Part shown: one piece after another, positions 1,474 to 19,153 of the stretch
Numbering within the stretch: the first letter of the stretch is position 1
Layout: each line of letters starts with the position of its first letter
Assembly (NCBI GenBank): GCA_002104945.1
Contig: MCFH01000002.1
Location: 868,001 to 932,000, forward strand
Origin: Piromyces finnis finn
Taxonomy: Eukaryota > Fungi > Neocallimastigomycota
Reading direction: 5' to 3'
DNA: 64,000 bases
Program-made: the position numbers and the translations under genes
The notes under the pieces: generated by a model
Told to the model about the DNA's origin: nothing
The model's input: only the letters and a program-made list of their open reading frames with translations
Database searches by the model: none

Positions 1474-4400
1474 TTAGGATAATGAATCATCGATATGGTT
1501 GACTTCAGACGAAGAAGGATTTATATTTGCATGAGAAATAGCAGTATTAATATTATCTTCTTCTTCACCTTCTTTTTCTTTCATTTCAATATCTTGTCCA
1601 TTTGATGGATGACTTGTATTATAACTAGAATTATTAGAAGAAGAATCATGTGATATTAATTTCATAAATTGATAATTTTTATTCTCACTTTCTCCTCCGG
1701 ATGGATGAGAAGAAGATGAGGATTTACTCAAGCTATTTTGAATAAACTCATCTTCTAAATTTTGTAATCCTTCTCCATAATCTAGGACTTCAAACCAAGT
1801 TTTAATGTTATTACCAGTACCTCGTTGGAAAGCACAGACTAAACGACGTTCATCAATTTCAATTTTCCAGACACATTGAATACCCGTAACTAAATCACGT
1901 TTATAGGTACCATAGGTTGTCTTTGTACTAACTCCACCAGTTTCAGTTGTTGTGACTGATGTACCTGGACGCTTATTAAGACGTTCATCAGAGGAGAGTT
2001 CCCAAAGTTTAATAGCACCCTCACTACCAGAAACGATACGATTTAATCTAGCATCATGATGGAAACAAGTAATAGCTGCAGTATGTCCATATAAGGCTGA
2101 TATAAATCGACCTGATGATGGTGACCATATACGGAGGGTATTATCTGCAGCTGCAGAAACAATGTAATTTGGAGAAATTTCTAAGAGACCAACCAAGGAA
2201 GAATGTCCTTCCAATTGATAAAGACATTGTCCAGTTTTAGTAGACCATACTCTAACGAAAGTATCCATACTACCACTTGCAGCTAATTCTAATTCTGGGG
2301 AATAACCAACACTATAGACTTTGTCCATATGACCACGCAATAAATGAACACTTTCACCGGTTTTTAAATCCCATACACGTACTGTAGAATCATAACTACC
2401 ACTAACTAATACATTACCACTACCTGCAACAGCTCTAACAGATTGGGTATGACCATGAAGGGTATGTAAAAAATAAGGATTTACATTATTGTTATTTCCA
2501 CTATTTAATGAAGAATCAACTGAATTGATTAAATTCAAGCGACCTGCAATAGTATTAACCATATTATTATTACCATCTGTATTAATTTGTCCTGCTTGTT
2601 GTTGGCCTAATGGAATAATTGGTATGGTCGAGAGTTGGTCACTTTCACTCATGTTCATAATTTGCTGATTTATCGTTTGTTGTTGAGATTGTGGGAAATA
2701 AGGTTTATCTTTTTTAGTATCAGGTAAACGCCATACTCTCAAGGTGGTATCTCTAGACCCAGTTACAATTAAAGGACATTCTGGTTCCATTTTACCGGTA
2801 ATTGAATTTTTCGTTGGGATAAGAATTTGAAGGCATCTAACAGTACTTGTGTGACCTTCAAATTGATGCGTACATTTACCTTCTTCAATATCCCAGATTC
2901 TAACAGTACGATCTGTACTACCGCTAACTAATGTATTTCCGTAGTAGTGTAATACCCATACACCACCTGTATGACCTGTTAATTTTTTACGTAGTTTACC
3001 CGTTGCAGTATCATAAATATTAATAATATTATCATCTGAACCTGAAATGATTTTATCATCATCAAATTGCAAACAAGTTACAACCATACTGCCATTTCCT
3101 GGAAAAGATATTTGATGACATCTACCATTATTCCAATTCTTTTTTAATAAATGATGACGACGATATAAATATTTGTATAAATTGGGTGGTATTTCATATC
3201 CTTGACTTTGAAGTAAAGCTGCAAAGTTTTCTTTATTTTCATCCGATAAATCATCTATATTAAATGTATACATTATATATTTTTAATATTTATTAATAAT
3301 TTTTTATTTTTATTTTAGTTTTCTTTTTAAATAAAGTCAAACTTGTATATAAAGTTTTTATAAAAATGATAATCAGATAATAGAATAATTAAATTTCAAT
3401 GAAATTATAAATATTATTTTATGATATCAATATAATATCTAATTTAAAAAAATATGATAATAAACAATATATAAAATACCATTTTCAAACGATAGTGTAT
3501 TTGCATCTTCCTTTAACAAAGATGTTGGATTACTATAAGAACTCGTACTTGCGACATTACCATTTAAAGTAACTGTAGATTTATTCTTATTTTTGTTCCA
3601 AAGTATAATAGCTTCCTTTATTTCTTTTTCATCAATCCAAAAATCATTTTTAAGTTGATATTTCCATATAGCAGTGTCAACACCAGGACTATTGAAAAGT
3701 TTATACCATGATTTTGATACTTGTGAACAAATAGCGATGCTATGAAAATCAAGATATTGTATGATACGATAGCTAATATGCACTGGTAACAAGCTAAAAA
3801 AATCATATTTTAATGAGGTTAAAATAAGTGAAGAAATATATTGAAGAGTAGGTACCCGACAACGTTTTAGTAAATGTAATAAAATATATGATTTCATTGT
3901 AGGTGGAAGTACGTCAAAAGTTGATATTATATATGGAATATTTGATATTGGAATATCTTCTTGATTATGTGAAAGATCAGTAATATCTCTAAATGGTGAT
4001 GAACCACTTTTGACTAGATCTAAATAATCATCTCTATTCTCATTTTCTGTATTATCACTATTATTGTTAATGTGTTTAATTTTTGAGTTTAATGTTGGTG
4101 ACATACTAGGACTTGGTAAATTTTTGTTGCATTCTGAATCACTTATATTTGCGGATGCTACTGAAGCGCTGTTAGAATTATGATTTCCTGAAATATTCAT
4201 ATTATTATTGCTAAAAACCTCTTCATGAGGATTAACATCCTGTTGTGAAGCGTGCCTTTTATGTGGTTTTCTTATAGTTGGTACATCATGTAAATGAGAA
4301 TTAGAATCCTTTGATTCTTCATTTTCAAAATATATATCATTTTGAATTAAGGTATCAATATCTGGCGCTGGTCTTTTACGATTAATACGCTTTATATATG

Positions 4401-6486: not shown

Positions 6487-9400
6487 TTATTTCTTTTGAT
6501 AAACACGAACATAATCAACAATCATTTCTGGACGAGTCCATTGTTTAGTATCACGAGAATAATTAAAGGTACCATATCCATTAAATGATCCACCAGCAAC
6601 ACCAACATTTAATATAAGATGGAATTTTTCATCAAATGGTTGACGAATATCAGTATATGGGTTTGTTCCTTTTCCGGTCCAGAAACTTGTACGAAGATCA
6701 ATTGAATAAGTAATTTCTTCATCTACTGAGAAAATTAATGCATCTTCAGTCCAATCTAAACCATAAACATGGAAATCATTTATAACATTATCAAATTGGA
6801 AAGATCCTCCAGCATAACCATTATTTGGCCATGGTCCTCCAAAATGAATAGCATTTTCAATAGCATCAGGAACTTGTCCTTTAGCTTTTAACATATCAAT
6901 TTCACCTGAAGATGCCCATTCACCATATACATTATCTTGTGGTAGCATCATAATTGATGGCCAAAGATATGGACCAGCTGGTAATTTTGCCTTAACCCTA
7001 ATCTTACCATATCTCCAAGCATTTCCACTTTTAAAGGTTCTTATACGACCACTTGTAACATCTTGAGTCCAGCTACAAGAATTTTCTACATTATTAGTAC
7101 ATTTTGCCTTTTCTGCTTCAGTCAACATAAATTGACCTTTTGGAATAGCTTTGATATGAAGATAACCATCTTCAACAAAAATATTTTCCTCGCGATCAAC
7201 ATAGCATTGCTTTTCACTATTACCTCCACCCCAACAATTAACTTCAACATCCCAAATAGATTTATCTAATTTATTACCATTAAATTCATCATGGAATACT
7301 AATGTATAATCATCAAAGTTTTGGATTTCTTGACTACTTGGATTTTCTATAGGTGAAGGTGAAAAAGAATTAACCGGTTTAACTTCTGTTATTTGGTCAG
7401 GTTTTTGATATACATGAACATAATCAATAATCATTTCTGGGCGAGTCCATTGTTTAGTATCACGTGAATAATCAAATGTACCATATCCATCAAATGATCC
7501 ACCGGCAACACCAACATTTAATAAAAGATGGAATTTTTCATCAAATGGTTGACGAATATCAGTATATGGATTTGTTCCTTTTCCAGTCCAAAAACTATTA
7601 TTAAGGTCAATTGAATAAGTAACTTGTTCATCAATAGAAAATATTAAATTATCTTCAGTCCAATCTAATCCATATATATGGAAATTATTGATAACATCAT
7701 CCATATTAAATGAATTTCCAGCAAAACCATTATTTGGCCATGGTCCTCCAAAATGAATAGCATTTTCAATAGAATTAGGAAGTTGACCTTTAGCTTTTAA
7801 AATATCAATTTCACCTGAAGATGCCCATTCACCATATACATTATCTTGTGGTAGCATCATAATTGATGGCCAAAGATATGGTCCAGCTGGTAATTTTGCT
7901 TTAACTCTAATCTTACCATACTTCCAAGCATGACCACTTTTGTAAGTTCTTATACGACCACTAGTAACACTTTGACCCCAGCTACAAGAGTTTTCAACAT
8001 TATTAGTACATTGATTTATTTCTTCATCATTTAATCTATATTCACCTTTTGGGATAGCTTTAATATGGAGTTGATTATTCTTAATGAAAATATTTTCTTC
8101 ATGATCAACATAACATTGTTTTTCTCCATTACCACCACCCCAACAGTTAACTTCAACATCCCATATTGATCTGTCTAATTTATTATTTTCAAAATCATCT
8201 TTAAATACTAAAGTATAATCATTAATACTTGGAATTTCTGGAATATAATCATTTCCAGGAGTATTTGTGAAGATTTCAATTGGCTTGACTTCAGTAATTT
8301 GTCCTGGTCTTTGATATACACGAACATAATCAACAATCATTTCCGGACGAGTCCATTGCGGAGTATCACGATTGTAATCAAATTTTCCAATCTTTTCAAA
8401 ATAACTACCTCCAACAGCAACATTTAATAAGAGATGGAATTTTTCATTGAATGGTTGACGTATATCATTATATGGATTTGGTCCTTTACCGGACCAAAAA
8501 CTTTTTCGAAGATCAATAGTATAGTGTGGAATTTCATCTACAGTAAAGATAAGGAAATTTTCTTCCCAATCTAAACCGTATACATGAAATTCATTAATAA
8601 TATTTTTAAGCTTGGCATCTTCAGCAGAAAATTCATTATATGGCCATTCACCTCCATAATGTATAGCAGAACCGATTGTGTCAGAAATTTGTCCTCTAGC
8701 TTCCATAATATCAATTTCTCCAGAAGATGCCCATGTACCGTAGACATAATCTTGTGGCAACATCCAAATAGCTGGCCAAAGATATGGCCCTGCTGGTAAC
8801 TTTGCCTTAACTCTAACTTTGCCATATTTCCATGCATGGCCACTCATATATGTTCTAATACGACCACTTGTAATATTCTGGGTCCAACTACATGAATTTT
8901 CATTATTATTAGTGCACTGCTTCATTTCTTCATCAGTCAATCTGTATTCACCTTTTGGAATAGCTTTAATATGAAGTTGATTATTTTTAATAAAAATATT
9001 TTCTTCATGATCAACATAACACTGTTTTTCACCATTTCCTCCACCCCAACAATTGACTTCAACATCCCATACAGATCTATCTAATGTATTTCCTTCAAAT
9101 TCTTCTGAAAACACAAGTTCCATCTCATCAATAGATCTGATTGTTGGTTCACTATACTGAGTTTTATCTGTTTTTGATGTAGTTGTAGTTTTTGTTTTTG
9201 TTGTTGTTTTTTTACTAGTAGTTGTTTTTTTGCTTGTGGTTGTTTTCTTGTTTGTGGTTTTATTTGAACAGTCATTTTTAATACCACACCATTCATTATT
9301 TTCATATCCCCACTTACCATCATTATCGGTATAAACCACATTACATTCTTCACAACAAGAATATCCTAAATTTTCAGAAAAGCATTTATTAGATGGTTGA

Positions 9401-10239
9401 AATTGACTATTACATTGTGAAGTATTAATTCCACACCACATTCCATTTTCATATCCCCAGTCGCCATCAGCATCAGAATAAATAATAGAGCATTCATTAC
9501 AACAAGGATATCCTAAAACCTCAGAAAAGCATTTACTAAGATTCTGTTGAATATTGTTGGAGCAAATTGATTTAATTATACCACACCATTCATTATTTTC
9601 AATACCCCAATCTCCATTTTCATCAGTATAAATTACATTGCATGTTGTTGTACAACAGTTATATCCAATAGATTCAAATGTACATTGATTAGTTTCTGAT
9701 TCATCACCTAAACCAGCACCTGTAACTAATGAATTGTTCACACACGAATAAAGTAAAGGATCGTAGCAAGCATCATTACAACCCTTAGTACCTAAAGGAC
9801 TTATTTTACAATGTATTATTTAATATTTAGCAACAATGATTATAAAGATAATTTAAGAATTTTCAACATACAAGGAAAAAAGCAATAATTAAAAAATTTT
9901 AAATTTATATTTAAATAATTTTATTCATGGTTGACAAAAATTATATATATATATTTTTTTTTCATTAATAATTTTTAATTTTTTTAATTGTAGATATATA
10001 TAAGAAACTTATTTATGTAAATTTATCGATTACTTATAATAATTTTAAAAATTAACAATTAGTATGATAATTAAATATAAAACATACCATAATAAATTAT
10101 TAGAATAACATATATAATTCTCTGGTGAATAACATTGTTTTCCACATGATTTTAAATTTGTACCACATTGCGCTTTAACATTTTTAAAGATTGCAAAAAG
10201 CAGAAGAAAAGAATCAATTAATCCTATATTTTTGAACAT
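6487..10239 (-). CDS. Secreted modular beta-1,3-glucanase-type protein: signal peptide - CBM52-like - 3x fungal dockerin (CBM10) - Thr/Lys linker - 3x GH16 (first intact, second and third lacking the acid/base Glu), ~1154 aa
   Basis: Exon 10239-10088 (MFKNIGLIDSFLLLFAIFKNVKA-QCG...) splices via GTATGT..AAG to exon 9799-6487, in frame. Three C..LGY.CC..C...YTD..G.WG.EN..WCGI dockerins. Three GH16 repeats with VNCWGGGN.EKQCY, TSGRIRT and WP.I.MLP motifs. Catalytic motifs read EIDIME, EIDILK and EIDMLK. Confidence 0.93.
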
Positions 10240-11979: not shown

Positions 11980-13849
11980 ATGGCATTCAGAGGAGGTGAT
12001 TATTGTAATTTAAACATAATATGAAACAGTACTTTTTTTTTTAAAAAAAAAAAAGAAGGAAATATAAAATATAAATTTTTGAATTTATGAGGATAATCAA
12101 GAGAAAATAATAAAAGGAATCAATTATAAATCTAAATTTTAAAAAATTAATGAATGTGAAATAACAAGAATCTATAATTTTAAAAATATAGAAATATATC
12201 AAATGAATATATAAAATTGTATTAAAAAATGTTATTAATATGTTCATAAATCTTGTAACCACAATCTAAAATAATTAAATAAAAAAAATAATTGGAAATA
12301 ATGTTACTTTTAAAATAATAAATAAGAATGGCTATATCTTTTTTACATATTTATTTTTTAAATAAAATTTTAAATTTAAAATATTAATATAAAGAAATAT
12401 TAACTTTTTATAAATAATAGGAAATCGTGGTGCTGCTAGAGGAGGCCGTGGTGGTTTTGGCGGTTCTTCAAGAGGAGGCCGTGGTGGCTTCGGTGGACCA
12501 AAGGGTGGTCGTGGCGGTTTTGGTGGTAAGGATTAAATTTAGAAATAGTGTTGAAGTCTATAGAATTAAGATTAATTGTATTTTATTAAAAAGGTCGCGG
12601 TGGCCGTGGTGGCGCTAGAGGTGGTCGCGGTGGCCGTGGAGGAAGTCGCGGTGGTCGCGGTGGTGCCAAGGGTGGCCGTGGAGGAGCCAAGGGTGGATCT
12701 AAGGTCATTGTTGAACCACATAGACACGAAGGTGTTTTCGTTGGTAGAGGTAAAGAAGATTTATTACTTACCAAGAATCTTGTTCCAGGAGAAAGTGTTT
12801 ATGGCGAAAAGAGAATTTCAGTTGATGTAAGTTATAAAAAATAAAAAAATATATTTTAACTAAAAAAAGTATTAATAATTAATAAATATTATTAAAAAGA
12901 ATGCTGATGGTACAAAAACTGAATACCGTGTCTGGAATCCATTCAGATCTAAGCTTGCTGCAGGTATTTTAGGTGGTATTGATCACATTCACATTGCTCC
13001 AGGAAAGAAGGTATTATATCTTGGTGGTGCTTCTGGTACTACTGTTTCTCATGTTGCTGATATTGTTGGTCCAGTAAGTATATAAATTTAAGTTTTCTTA
13101 AAAGTAATAATTATTTAATATTATATCATTAAATGTATTTGCGTTATATAATTTAACTTAAATTGAGATTTTGAAATCGATATTTCAAAAGATTTATTTA
13201 AGATAAAGTTTTATTAAGTGTTTTTGAAAATATTAATATAAAGTATACATATAATTTGAATTATATATAATATATAATTGTGATAATAATGGATACATAA
13301 AAAACACTTGGTAATGATCTTAACCTAATCATTAAATGAATATAATTGTTTTTTTTATTATTTGGTAAAAAAAAATATTATATTTTATTTAAAAAATTAT
13401 GATCATTATAATAAATTTTCAAAAATATATAGACTGGTGTTGTCTATGCAGTAGAATTTTCACACCGTGTTGGTCGTGAACTCATTGCTATGGCCAAAAA
13501 GCGTACTAATGTCATTCCAATTATAGAAGATGCTCGTTACCCACAAAAGTACAGAATGCTTGTATCTATGGTTGATGTTGTATTTGCTGATGTAGCTCAA
13601 CCAGATCAAGCTAGAATTATTGCACTTAATTCTCATATGTTCTTAAAGACAGGTGGTCACATTGTTATTTCTATTAAGGCTAACTGTATTGATTCTACTA
13701 TGGAAGCCGCTAAAGTTTTTGCTTCAGAAGTTAAGAAGATGCAAGCTGAAATGATTAAGCCACAAGAACAATTAACTTTAGAACCATATGAACGTGATCA
13801 CGCTTTAGTTGTTGGTGAATACCGTGCTGCTCCAAAGAAGAAGAACTAG
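11980..13849 (+). CDS. NOP1: Fibrillarin, rRNA 2'-O-methyltransferase, 5 exons, ~314 aa
   Basis: Exons 11980-11995, 12421-12525, 12594-12826, 12900-13073, 13433-13849. RGG/GAR N-terminus, then [54 protein letters not shown]. Confidence 0.98.
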
Positions 13850-15193
13850 ATTAGTTATTAGAATAGAATATTTTACTAAAATATTAAAATAAAGTTCTTA
13901 TTTATTATTTTCTTATAAAATATATTCATAATATATTAAAGAAATCAAGTGAAATATACTTGTTTTCAAATAATTTTATAACATAAACGTAATTTATTTT
14001 TTTATTTATAAATTTTATATATTTAAATCACAAAACAAAATAATTATCTGTTTAAAAATTATTATAAATTCATTTTACATTCAAATACTTTTACATGATT
14101 AAAATAAGACAATAAATAATAATTTATAATTATAATTATATTTTGAAAAAACATTAATTTATGTGTTAAAAAAAGTATTTAATTAAAATTCTGAAGTTTT
14201 TAATATTTTTTTAATTTTAATATATAGTTTTGGATGAAAAAATAAAGTAGAAAATGTGTTATTATTAAAAAAATAGGTATATAATTTAAAAATTAAAATT
14301 TGTTGCCATTAAAAAATCTAATATTTTTTCCTAATTTTTTTTTTTTTTTTTTTTTTTTGGATTTATTAATAATAGTTAAATATCAATTCTATTAATAAAT
14401 AAAGATTTTTAAATTTTTTATTTATAAATATTTACTTTTTGAAATTATAATACATAATTTATAACACTTTTTTATTGTATAAAATTTAAAAAGGTTTTAT
14501 TTAATAATTCATTTTTGAATATTAATGTTTATATTATCTGTAACTTTTTTTTTTAGTTCTGTGTAACATATTTATTATTTTTAAAATATTAATAATTTAA
14601 ATTAACAAAAAATATTTCAGTATTCCTTTGATAAATTTTAGCAGTACAATACATATTATTATGTAGAATTTATCGAGAAAGATGATTGGTTATAAATTGT
14701 AAGAATAATATAAAAATGTAATATGATTGGTTGTAATTACTATAATTATATATGGTGTTATAAACCAATACATAATTGAATCATATATGATCAATATTTA
14801 CTATATTTGTGTCGAATTGATAGGATTAATATATTGTATACAGTGGTTAAATTGAATCTAAGAAATATGGTATTTTTTTCAAGAAAAGTTTTAAATATAA
14901 TTTATTTATTAATTACTAACAAAAATTAATATTTAATGGTATGTAATAAAATTTTATTATTACAATGATTACAATCAAAAAACATAAATAACATTACATA
15001 AAATTAAGGATATATCATTCATACTATTATTTTGATTAAAACGAAATATAATACCAAAATATATAATAAAACCTTTTTCATTATTATTATAGTGAATTAT
15101 TATTATTATTTTATATATTACATAAATTATTATCTATCATTTAACTATATTAAATAATAATTTACATTAAAACATTTATTCTACTTTATAGTC

Positions 15194-15806: not shown

Positions 15807-18800
15807 ATGGCTGTTAACGGATTTTCTCACTTTACTCTTAATGCTCCAAATGAATCATTCTATCAAATTGCTATTGATTACTATTCATCCCTTGGTTTCA
15901 AGACCGTTTCTCAATTAAATGAAGCTGTTAAGGCTCTTACTGGTATTTTAAATGAAAACAAGAATGAAAAGGAAACTTGGCTCCACATTTTCCCAGCTGG
16001 TTCTAAGAACCTTGATGGTACTACTATTAGAATTGTTTTAAGTCCAAGCGATCAAGTCCAATCTTTCCAAAAGACTTTAAAAGAAAAGACTAAGGCTTTA
16101 ATGGACGGTGACTTTAACTCACTTTCTCTTTTTGCCACTTTTGCTTCTGGTGATGTTAAGGTAAAATAAAATAAAGTGCTAAAAAATAATAGTCATAAGA
16201 ATATAATAAAAATAAATGAATTAATTTTGTGAAAGTTTAATGTTTTTAATATAGAACAAAATATTAAGAATGAGTAATTTAAAAGTATTAACGAAATGAT
16301 TTTAATAAATTTTATTATTTATTTAGTCTGTTGAAAATGTTCTTTCTAAGACTAAGCTTCCATACAAGCTTATTACTAAGCCATTCGTTACCACTGAAGG
16401 TAACTCTGAAATTAAGGAACTTTACACTATTGATCCATTAAATAATGTTATTATGTTCACTAACAGAGTTAACCCATTCACCCCAGCTCTTGATAAGGAT
16501 GGAATTATCTCTGAAAACAAAAAAGAATCTTCTCCAAAGAAGTCTCCACTTCCAAAGAATAGTACTGGAAAGAGTGTTGGTATTATTACTAGTGGTGGTG
16601 ATTCTTCTGGTATGAATGCTGCTGTTAGAGCTATTGTTAGAGTTGCTCTTACTAAGGGTATTACCCCATATGCTATCTATGAAGGTTACCAAGGTAAAAA
16701 TATAAAAATAATAAATTTTTATGAAATAAAATATATTGAATATTATTAATATATAAATATAATTAACTAATTAAATATGTTAAATATAATAAATATAATA
16801 AAATTTAAAATAAATAAAATAATTAAAAGGTATGGTTGATGGTGGTGATAAGATTAAGGCTCTTTCTTGGGAAGATGTTGGTGATTGGTTAGCTATTGGT
16901 GGTACTGAAATTGGTACTGCTCGTTGTCAAGAATTCCGTACCGTTGAAGGTCGTCTTACTGCTGTTAGAAACTTAGTTAAGAGTGGTATTGATGCTCTTA
17001 TTATTTGTGGTGGTGATGGTTCTCTTACTGGTGCTGATTTCTTAAGAGCTGAATGGACTGAATTCGTTGACAGATTAGTTAAGCAAAAGCGTCTTACTGA
17101 AGAAGAAGCTGCCCCATACCGTAGTCAACTTACTATTGTTGGTTTAGTTGGTTCTATTGATAACGATATGGCTCAAACTGATCTTACTATTGGTGCCATG
17201 ACTGCTCTTCAACGTATTTGTGAAGCTCTCGATTCTATTAAGTCCACTGCTATGTCTCACCAAAGAGCTTTCGTTGTTGAAGTTATGGGTAGACACTGTG
17301 GTTGGTTAGGTCTTATGGCTGCTATTGCTTGTGGTGCTGATTGGTTATTCCTTCCAGAACTTCCACCACCAATTGGTGATGAATTCATTGCTTCTGGTGA
17401 TTGGGAAACTGAAATGTGTGACATTCTTAGCAAGGAACGTAAGCTCGGTAACCGTAAGACTATTGTTATTGTTTGTGAAGGTGCTATTGATCGTAACTTA
17501 AAGCCAATTAAGCCAGAATATGTTAAGGATGTTCTTACTAAGAGACTTAACTTTGATACTAGAGTTACTTGTTTAGGTCACGTTCAAAGAGGTGGTGTTC
17601 CATGTGCTTATGATCGTTATCTTGCTACCGTTCAAGGTGCTGAAGCTGTTAATGCTGTTATTGAAACTACCCCAACTACTCCATCTCCAATGATTGGTAT
17701 TAGTAACAACAAGGTTATTCGTGTTCCATTAAAGAATGCTGTTGCTCAAACTAAGGAAGTTGCTAAGGCTATTGCTCGTAAGGACTTCAAGAGAGCTATG
17801 GAATTACGTGACCCAGAATTCAACTCTTCTTACAATGCTTACATTGAAAGCACTATCTTAGCTGATGGTCCAGGAACCAGAAAGGTTGAAGAATCTAAGC
17901 GTCTTAGAGTTGGTATTATGCACGTTGGTGCTCCAGCTGGTGGTATGAATGCTGCTACTAGAACATTCGTTCGTCTTTGCCTTAACCGTGGTCACACTCC
18001 ACTTGGTATTCACAATGGTTTCTCTGGTTTAATTGCTGACCAAGTTCAACCAATTCAATGGCAAGATGTTAACGGATGGGTTAGTATGGGTGGTTCTGAA
18101 TTAGGTATTAACCGTGACCAACCATCTCCAACTCCAAACCCATTAAATGCCAAGCCACAATTCGGTAACTATATCGATACTGGTCTTATTGCTTTCCACA
18201 TGCAAAAGAACAATATTCAAGCTTTAATGATCATTGGTGGTTTTGAAGCTTACACTTCTTTAATTACTTTAACTAAGGCTAGAGAACTCTACCCAGGTTT
18301 ATGTATCCCAATGATTTTATTACCAGCTACCGTTTCTAACAATGTTCCAGGTACCGATTTCTCTCTTGGTTGTGATACTGCCTTAAACTGCATTGTTGAT
18401 GCTTGTGATACTATTAAGCAATCTGCTTCTTCTAACCGTAAGAGAGTCTTTGTTGTTGAAGTTCAAGGAGGTAACTGTGGTTACTTATCTGTTATGGGTG
18501 CTCTTGCTTCTGGTGCTTCATCTTGTTACATTCCAGAAGAAGGTATTACCCTTGATACCCTTCAAAAGGATATTAACCATCTTGTCAAGCGTTACGCTTA
18601 TGAAGAATCTGCTAACATTCCATCTTACGGTCGTCTTATTCTCAGAAATGAAACTGCTGGTAACAAGACTTACACTACTGATGTTATTTCTACTATTCTT
18701 AAGGAAGAAGGAAAGGGATTATTCGATTCTCGTAGTGCTGTTCTCGGTCACTTACAACAAGGTGGTATTCCATCACCATTAGATCGTATTCGTGCTACTC

Positions 18801-19153
18801 GTCTTACCGTTAACTGTGTTGATTGGTTACAAGAAATGGCTTTCAAGTCTATAGATGAACACAAGAAATCATCTAACCTTTCTGACATTCGTACTCCAAC
18901 TGTCTTCACTAAGGGTGCTGAAACTGCTACTGTTATTGGTATCTGTGGTGCCGATATTAAGATTACTCCAATCTTAGATCTTCTTGCTGAAACTAACTTA
19001 AATAAGCGTAAGGGTACCAATGAATGGTGGTTAGGATTAAAGGACTTAACCAAGACCTTAGCTAAGTACGAATATGAAACTGAAGAAGAACGTGCTGCTT
19101 TAGAAAAGGTTTTAGGTGATAGAAAACAAGCTACTGGTAAGAACAAGTTATAA
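15807..19153 (+). CDS. PFK: ATP-dependent 6-phosphofructokinase, eukaryotic tandem type with N-terminal glyoxalase-like domain, ~1014 aa
   Basis: Exons 15807-16160, 16327-16693, 16830-19153. [19 protein letters not shown] (ATP-type), [16 protein letters not shown], duplicated regulatory half ([19 protein letters not shown]). Strong high-expression codon bias (AAG, CGT, GCT). Confidence 0.98.

Follow-up and report, generated by a model that had tools for sequence, protein, structure and literature searches.

Loss of catalytic residues is already known in laminarinase-type members of glycoside hydrolase family 16 (GH16). Approximately 9% of GH16_4 members, in Metazoa and Fungi, show the loss of either or both catalytic residues, and the non-catalytic homologues serve as binding proteins (PMC6827312). 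The invertebrate GNBP, bGRP and LGBP proteins (CAZy GH16_4) are of this kind: they keep the domain, a GH16 fold of the laminarinase type, while catalytic residues in it have been replaced. Here, we describe a gene of the anaerobic gut fungus Piromyces finnis that lies on the minus strand at 10239-6487 of a 64,000-nucleotide stretch of DNA (assembly GCA_002104945.1, contig MCFH01000002.1, forward-strand positions 868,001 to 932,000). This whole stretch is called the window, and coordinates refer to it unless another locus is named. The gene encodes a dockerin-bearing protein with three tandem GH16 modules (M1, M2 and M3). Modules with the acid/base Glu, such as M1, are referred to as E-type, and those in which this Glu is replaced by Lys, such as M2 and M3, as K-type. 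We put at roughly 55% the probability that M2 and M3 have been preserved as non-hydrolytic modules that bind a ligand, presumably beta-glucan, and cooperate in cis with M1 and with an N-terminal CBM52 carbohydrate-binding module. The joining in cis of an intact module to two K-type ones within a fungal dockerin protein, the set of substitutions and its conservation appear not to have been described in the open literature that we searched, in which we also found no description of inactive glycoside hydrolase modules in fungal cellulosomes or of GH16 proteomics in P. finnis.

A preliminary description of this DNA, made from its letters alone, had drawn attention to the catalytic motifs of the three modules, and an exact position search places every motif that it quoted where it had been located. 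M1 (8302-9156, minus strand, as for all features of the gene) carries EIDIME, with the acid/base Glu encoded by GAA at 8701-8703, together with WPAIWM at 8761-8778 and IGSAIH at 8659-8676. With the conserved His and an aromatic residue at position 254, its motif set is complete. The corresponding motifs of M2 (7396-8256) read EIDILK, with a Lys AAA codon at 7795-7797, WPSIMM (7855-7872) and IENAIH (7753-7770), and those of M3 (6490-7344, followed by the stop codon at 6487-6489) read EIDMLK, with Lys AAA at 6886-6888, WPSIMM (6946-6963) and IENAIH (6844-6861). Thus the ExDxxE motif, which comprises the nucleophile Glu, an Asp and the acid/base Glu, is complete in M1 and incomplete in M2 and M3. 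The same division holds for the other marks of laminarinase-type enzymes, namely the WPA...W(M/L) pattern, the Trp platform at subsite -1 and the aromatic residue of the positive subsites, all of which are found in M1 and not in M2 or M3. On its motifs, M1 is presumed to be an active beta-1,3(4)-glucanase. The modules remain similar overall, with pairwise identities of 71% (M1-M2), 67% (M1-M3) and 80% (M2-M3).

To place these changes in context, residue frequencies were taken from 287 GH16 domains of retrieved relatives, with the orthologue cluster described below left out of the set. In M2, whose numbering is used throughout, the acid/base Glu at position 154 (Glu in 287/287 relatives) is Lys, the -1 Trp at position 133, which is the second Trp of WPAxW (Trp in 287/287), is Met, Ala131 (282/287) is Ser, Gly251 of the AVGG motif (269/287) is Ala, and the aromatic residue at position 254 (273/287) is Ser; M2 also has a Glu at position 164. 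Because the acid/base Glu and the second WPAxW Trp are invariant among the relatives, the motif changes of M2 and M3 are not attributable to chance. Across the three species described below, the six K-type modules share 17 fixed substitutions that are found in no E-type fungal module (K26, V87, I116, S131, M133, N139, E143, K154, K156, E164, A179, G180, F183, S215, T224, A251 and S254), and eight of them fall within motifs that build the cleft. The nucleophile Glu149, Asp151, the -2 Trp144 and His168 are kept in 6/6 K-type modules, and two other family positions that line the cleft, Asn43 and Glu45, are still present.

The likely consequences for the cleft can be read from laminarinases with known structures. 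In SCLam (E144, D146, E149), W129 stacks on the -1 glucose, W139 stacks at -2 and W240 at +1, two residues of the strand that follows the catalytic one, T161 and H163, form hydrogen bonds to the +1 glucose, and the -1 stacking Trp sits 15 residues before the nucleophile (PMC7961093). A survey of the family describes the WPA...W(M/L) pattern, a Trp or Phe that lines the positive subsites and, on the strand beside ExDxxE, a conserved His (PMC6827312). At the sequence level, W129 of SCLam corresponds to position 133, W139 to Trp144 and H163 to His168, and W240 is probably the equivalent of position 254. By this correspondence, the K-type modules have lost the acid/base, the -1 Trp platform and, probably, the +1 aromatic platform, the two platforms being those on either side of the scissile bond. 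The overall fold is nevertheless confidently predicted to be a GH16 jelly roll: an AlphaFold2 model of M2 has a pLDDT of 94.6, with strands at 149-155 and 162-170 (DSSP), and the top Foldseek matches of this model in the PDB are all GH16 laminarinases (E ~1e-21, TM 0.7-0.87).

Glu164 had been put forward in the preliminary description as a new residue that might rescue acid/base function. This position lies four residues before the conserved His, on the strand beside the catalytic strand. Given the strand assignment of the model and the bulge at ExDxxE, Glu164 should be a cross-strand neighbour of Lys154 that faces the cleft, an arrangement that would allow a Lys154-Glu164 pair to form. A Glu at this position is also present in 20 of the 286 relatives whose acid/base Glu is intact, which typically read ...VEGTVH or ...TESTLH. 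Rescue is unlikely because these 20 relatives have both residues, and the earlier idea is weakened accordingly. On this distribution, Glu164 is an ordinary variant of a +1-strand site and gives no evidence of acid/base relocation or of a compensating gain.

The K-type modules are shared by three species. In Piromyces sp. E2, contig KZ151094.1 carries a syntenic orthologue with 83% DNA identity, an uninterrupted open reading frame (ORF) with the same order of one E-type and two K-type modules, and a conserved gene order of fibrillarin, the GH16 gene and an F-box/WD40 gene. Its M2 reads EIDIMK and IENAIH, and its M3 reads EIDIMK, IESGIH and YFSPSIMM. The single E2 ORF (locus L024, 6295-9222) runs from the third dockerin through the linker and across the three GH16 modules; the GenBank annotation of this locus (L024, 6001-9222) splits the orthologue into a 146-amino-acid 'DOC2, partial' and a 440-amino-acid model with only faint GH16 matches. 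A third species, known from metagenomes and spliced transcripts (the metagenome species below), is represented by a cluster at 90% identity from ENA and JGI data (P0001, P0122, P0123 and P0125), which has the same three-module layout, with EIDILK, IENAIH and WPSIMM in M2 and EIDIMK, VESGIH and FFAPSIMM in M3. One member, P0123, is full length (1150 amino acids) and was found in three JGI samples; because it is spliced, it is derived from a transcript. Thus, the Lys, the Trp-to-Met change and Glu164 are fixed in 6/6 K-type modules of three species, and neither a stop codon nor a frameshift interrupts the ~570 codons of M2 and M3 in any of them.

A maximum-likelihood (ML) tree orders these events. 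The closest outgroup is P0126, a protein from JGI metatranscriptomes (L012-L014) with two dockerins, a Thr-rich linker and one intact EIDIME module that is 76% identical to M1 and has a C-terminal ending identical to that of M3. This tree puts P0126 as sister to the grouping (M1s, (M2s, M3s)), support for the K-type clade is 100/99, and modules from the three species fall together as M2s and as M3s. The replacement of Glu by Lys thus happened a single time, following a tandem duplication, and was inherited through another duplication and no fewer than two speciations. On the same topology, the M2/M3 duplication is older than the split of the three species, and P0126 likely preserves, in another anaerobic fungus, the architecture that preceded duplication.

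The relatives retrieved beyond these orthologues are of the E type. In the P. finnis genome, this GH16 group has just two further members, CBM52-GH16 proteins that each have a single EIDIME module and no dockerins. One of these paralogues (L004, 1036-2331, on contig C24) and P0130 have a long Asn-rich linker in which NGWNGWNW units recur, an unusual low-complexity spacer of Asn and Trp. A scan of metagenome contigs with a K-type alignment found no further K-type module, only E-type paralogues (57-64% identity) and distant matches. Word searches with M2 (candidates of 158-502 and 600-1900 amino acids) found K-type modules in only one 90% cluster; at the DNA level, the window's own genome was the anaerobic-fungus genome covered, and the E2 orthologue was masked by its wrong gene model, so K-type modules may yet occur in other fungal genera. 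Among relatives that carry a name, a Blastocladiomycota protein (44%) and bacterial GH16 proteins (~40-44%) come nearest, no named metazoan protein is among the top 120 relatives, and an ESM Atlas look-up returned generic bacterial GH16 clusters only.

Selection on each module was estimated from the three species, which are separated by synonymous divergence (dS) of ~0.5-0.7. ML estimates of omega, the ratio of nonsynonymous to synonymous substitution rates (dN/dS), under GY+F3X4 are 0.039 for M1, 0.034 for M2 and 0.068 for M3. Likelihood-ratio tests against omega = 1 give 2ΔlnL of 313, 337 and 252, respectively, and neutrality is rejected for each module. Nei-Gojobori estimates for the window against the metagenome species (dS ~0.6) are 0.107, 0.098 and 0.185, and those for the metagenome species against E2, a pair unaffected by the gene conversion described below, are 0.061, 0.070 and 0.104. 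By these measures, M2 is constrained as strongly as the motif-complete M1 and M3 slightly less, which excludes decay. The view of the preliminary description that these modules are maintained is thus borne out (omega of 0.034 and 0.068, against 0.039 for M1), and the pattern that it had named as contrary, a private and recent Lys with dN/dS near 1, is not what is found, since three species share the Lys and the test statistics for M2 and M3 are 337 and 252.

The higher values for M3 have to be read with the history of the window's own gene in mind. Here, the DNA of M2 and M3 is identical at 0.92-0.99 over M2 positions 106-180 and at 0.90-0.97 over positions 226-283. These tracts (7717-7941 against 6808-7032, and 7408-7581 against 6499-6672, minus strand) are more alike than M3 is to its orthologues, and gene conversion in the window's gene is therefore indicated. 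Conversion accounts for the M2-like LWPS and IENAIH of the window's M3, where M3 of the other two species has FAPS or FSPS and (V/I)ESGIH, and it inflates M3 distances that involve the window.

The modules belong to a spliced, transcribed gene, and the window around it is strongly AT-rich (12-35% G+C). The preliminary description had spanned 6487-9130. This interval lies within the gene, but its boundary is not there: the minus-strand ORF at 6487-9741 is a single long reading frame of 1084 amino acids, exon 2 reaches 9799, and a first coding exon lies at 10088-10239. The two coding exons (152 and 3313 nucleotides) close the reading frame around one intron of 288 nucleotides at 9800-10087, which has GT..AG ends (GTATGT...AAG) and interrupts the CBM52 module. 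Transcript contigs from three runs join 9799 to 10088, depth is zero at 9806-10067, and the orthologous transcript P0123 is continuous across the same exon junction. Because the contigs join the exons, the intron has no depth and its ends are GT..AG, the gene is transcribed and spliced. Public transcript contigs from four runs (three studies) show 0 differences from the window wherever they can be placed on the coding sequence. One piece covers the M3 Lys codon; the listed pieces end at 7754 and restart at 7852, which leaves the M2 Lys codon, within the stretch repeated between M2 and M3, uncovered. The neighbours of the gene in the window are an F-box/WD40 gene at 1474-4200 (minus strand), a fibrillarin gene at 12354-14141, identified by DNA match to the Piromyces sp. 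E2 fibrillarin locus, and a phosphofructokinase gene at 16832-19153 (plus strand).

From N- to C-terminus, the protein comprises a predicted signal peptide, CBM52, three CBM10 dockerins, a Thr/Lys-rich linker and the GH16 modules M1, M2 and M3. Exon 1 has its start codon at 10239-10237 and encodes a signal-peptide-like N-terminus of ~23 amino acids, predicted from a hydrophobic stretch by eye and from orthologue P0123, followed by the first part of a Cys motif of the CBM52 type. The second half of the module lies at the start of exon 2 (9727-9799; PF10645, Carb_bind). Searched separately, exon 2 alone scores 25.8 bits against PF10645 and exon 1 alone 22.6 bits (cut-off 25), whereas residues 1-100 of P0123 score 46.8 bits across profile positions 1-49; the module is assigned to CBM52 on the score of exon 2 alone, which is above the cut-off. 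In work on S. pombe Eng1, CBM52 is said to bind beta-1,3-glucan. In the ORF, Pfam detects three CBM_10 stretches (E 9e-44), at 9577-9684, 9427-9531 and 9280-9384, and three Glyco_hydro_16 stretches (PF00722, E 1.4e-34), and a Thr/Lys-rich linker was located in the translation at 9157-9267. The three repeats confirm the dockerin-bearing GH16 protein of the preliminary description. Tandem CBM10 repeats on a secreted protein are characteristic of fungal cellulosome dockerins, and secretion is here predicted from the signal peptide.

We propose that the gene product would be a secreted, dockerin-anchored beta-1,3(4)-glucanase of a Piromyces-lineage anaerobic gut fungus, with M1 as its ordinary retaining laminarinase-type catalytic module. 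M2 and M3 would derive from one tandem duplicate of M1 in which substitutions remade the centre of the cleft at -1/+1 (Lys for the acid/base Glu, Met for the stacking Trp at -1, Ser for the aromatic residue at +1 and Ala for the AVGG Gly) while the nucleophile Glu, Asp, -2 Trp and His were retained. Without the general acid/base and the -1 platform, M2 and M3 most likely do not hydrolyse glucan. They would bind beta-glucan chains or a related ligand non-catalytically, which would give M1 and CBM52 additional targeting or avidity in cis, whether on the cellulosome or at the cell surface. M2 and M3 must have a function, because purifying selection on them is about as tight as on M1; their loss of hydrolysis, their ligand binding and their cooperation with M1 we infer.

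Several observations weigh against this proposal. The -1 Trp and the probable +1 aromatic residue, now lost, are two contacts that hold glucan in active laminarinases, and M2 and M3 may bind beta-1,3-glucan weakly, or may bind another ligand or in another way. The protein already has a CBM52, and its need for more binding modules is not obvious. In the other two species, M3 has lost a further near-invariant residue, Trp129 (FAPS or FSPS in place of LWPS), a hint of drift in M3 away from the canonical cleft. The mapping of SCLam residues onto M2 was made from motif spacing and one pairwise alignment, not from coordinates. Finally, retention of the nucleophile Glu and of Asp in six of six K-type modules is compatible with residual or altered chemistry. 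This retention is weak evidence, because omega is so low that nearly every residue is retained.

The retained residues lead to one rival explanation, namely that M2 and M3 remain enzymes whose chemistry has changed, acting as transglycosylases, as hydrolases with another acid/base (Glu164 or the Lys itself) or through substrate-assisted catalysis. All K-type modules (6/6) retain Glu149, Asp151, His168 and the -2 Trp144, constraint on M2 and M3 is as strong as on M1, and Glu164 would lie beside position 154 and face the cleft, where the equivalent SCLam strand touches the +1 sugar. Set against this, Glu164 is no compensating novelty, being found in 20/286 relatives with the acid/base Glu, and the neighbouring Lys would be expected to keep it deprotonated. 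Moreover, the replacement of the invariant -1 Trp (287/287) by Met and of the +1 aromatic residue by Ser disfavours productive binding across the scissile bond. We know of no GH16 enzyme with a relocated acid/base, and we regard continued enzymatic activity as unlikely. Its more ambitious form, to which we give little credence, holds that the rebuilt active centre, with Glu and Asp kept, a Lys154-Glu164 pair and Met in place of the -1 Trp, acts on beta-glucan in a reaction that is non-hydrolytic or uses a relocated acid/base, for example transglycosylation or the remodelling of chains. If so, one polypeptide would combine a hydrolase with two enzymes of new chemistry.

Purifying selection shows that M2 and M3 have a function and not what kind, and they might instead be kept for the binding of some other polysaccharide, for contact with a protein (an assembly partner, say, or a glucanase inhibitor for which they act as decoys), or as rigid spacers that position M1. 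Remodelling rather than preservation of the -1 and +1 subsites would fit such a role, as would the charged residues added around the cleft (Lys154, Lys156, Glu143 and Glu164) and the loss of Trp129 from M3 in two species. The remodelled subsites and the lost Trp make this a serious rival, though one that we consider improbable: Asn43, Glu45, Trp144, Glu149, Asp151 and His168 remain in the cleft, CBM52 and an intact laminarinase-type module suggest beta-glucan, a spacer function would not account for an omega of 0.03, and no candidate partner was identified. Recent inactivation, with the duplicates drifting to loss, or a Lys that is a sequencing or assembly artefact, has hardly any probability left. 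The somewhat higher omega of M3 and the loss of a further conserved Trp in two species are what decay would predict, but omega is 0.03-0.07 with neutrality rejected, the ~570 codons are free of stops and frameshifts in every species, and independent transcript contigs are identical to the window where they lie. A Lys shared by three species at dS ~0.5-0.7, together with low omega, refutes both decay and artefact, and a peculiarity of a single species or strain is excluded by dS of ~0.6.

In animals, glycoside hydrolase look-alikes without catalytic activity are known to act as receptors. If M2 and M3 are binding modules as proposed, a pair of pseudo-enzymes behind their own active paralogue, under similar purifying selection, offers a natural test case for the passage from a catalytic to a presumably binding module. 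The 17 fixed substitutions, eight of them in cleft motifs, form a short, defined list for mutation in either direction. The locus also bears on annotation, in that genome annotation counts all three modules as GH16 enzymes, and the E2 gene is split into two wrong models.

Several groups of proteins can be compared with this protein. CBM52-GH16 paralogues, found in the same fungus and in Piromyces sp. E2 and annotated as 'glycoside hydrolase family 16 protein', are 57-63% identical to its modules and share the N-terminal CBM52 Cys motif but have one GH16 module with intact EIDIME and no dockerins. The outgroup P0126 resembles it more closely in its dockerins, Thr-rich linker and M3-like C-terminus, and differs in having two dockerins, one intact module and no K-type modules. 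The GH16 laminarinases with structures (LamR 3ILN, SCLam 6XOF, 7WWC, ZgLamA/C and TmLam 3AZX) have the fold and motifs in common with it. M1 matches them in sequence at E ~1e-26 and has every catalytic and platform residue. Identity to these enzymes is, however, ~25-30%, the fungal modules are ~30 residues longer and have Cys pairs, and neither M2 nor M3 has the acid/base Glu, the Trp at -1 or the aromatic residue at +1.

The analogy to GNBP and bGRP drawn in the preliminary description holds as a way of working and does not extend to family membership, for which an N-terminal recognition domain would be expected: a Pfam search of the ORF and both exons found no insect-type N-terminal glucan-recognition domain, only CBM52, CBM10 and GH16. 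Two further differences set this protein apart from GNBP and bGRP. Here, the acid/base alone is lost and the nucleophile is kept, and the K-type modules are fused in cis and in tandem behind an intact catalytic paralogue on a secreted, dockerin-bearing fungal protein.

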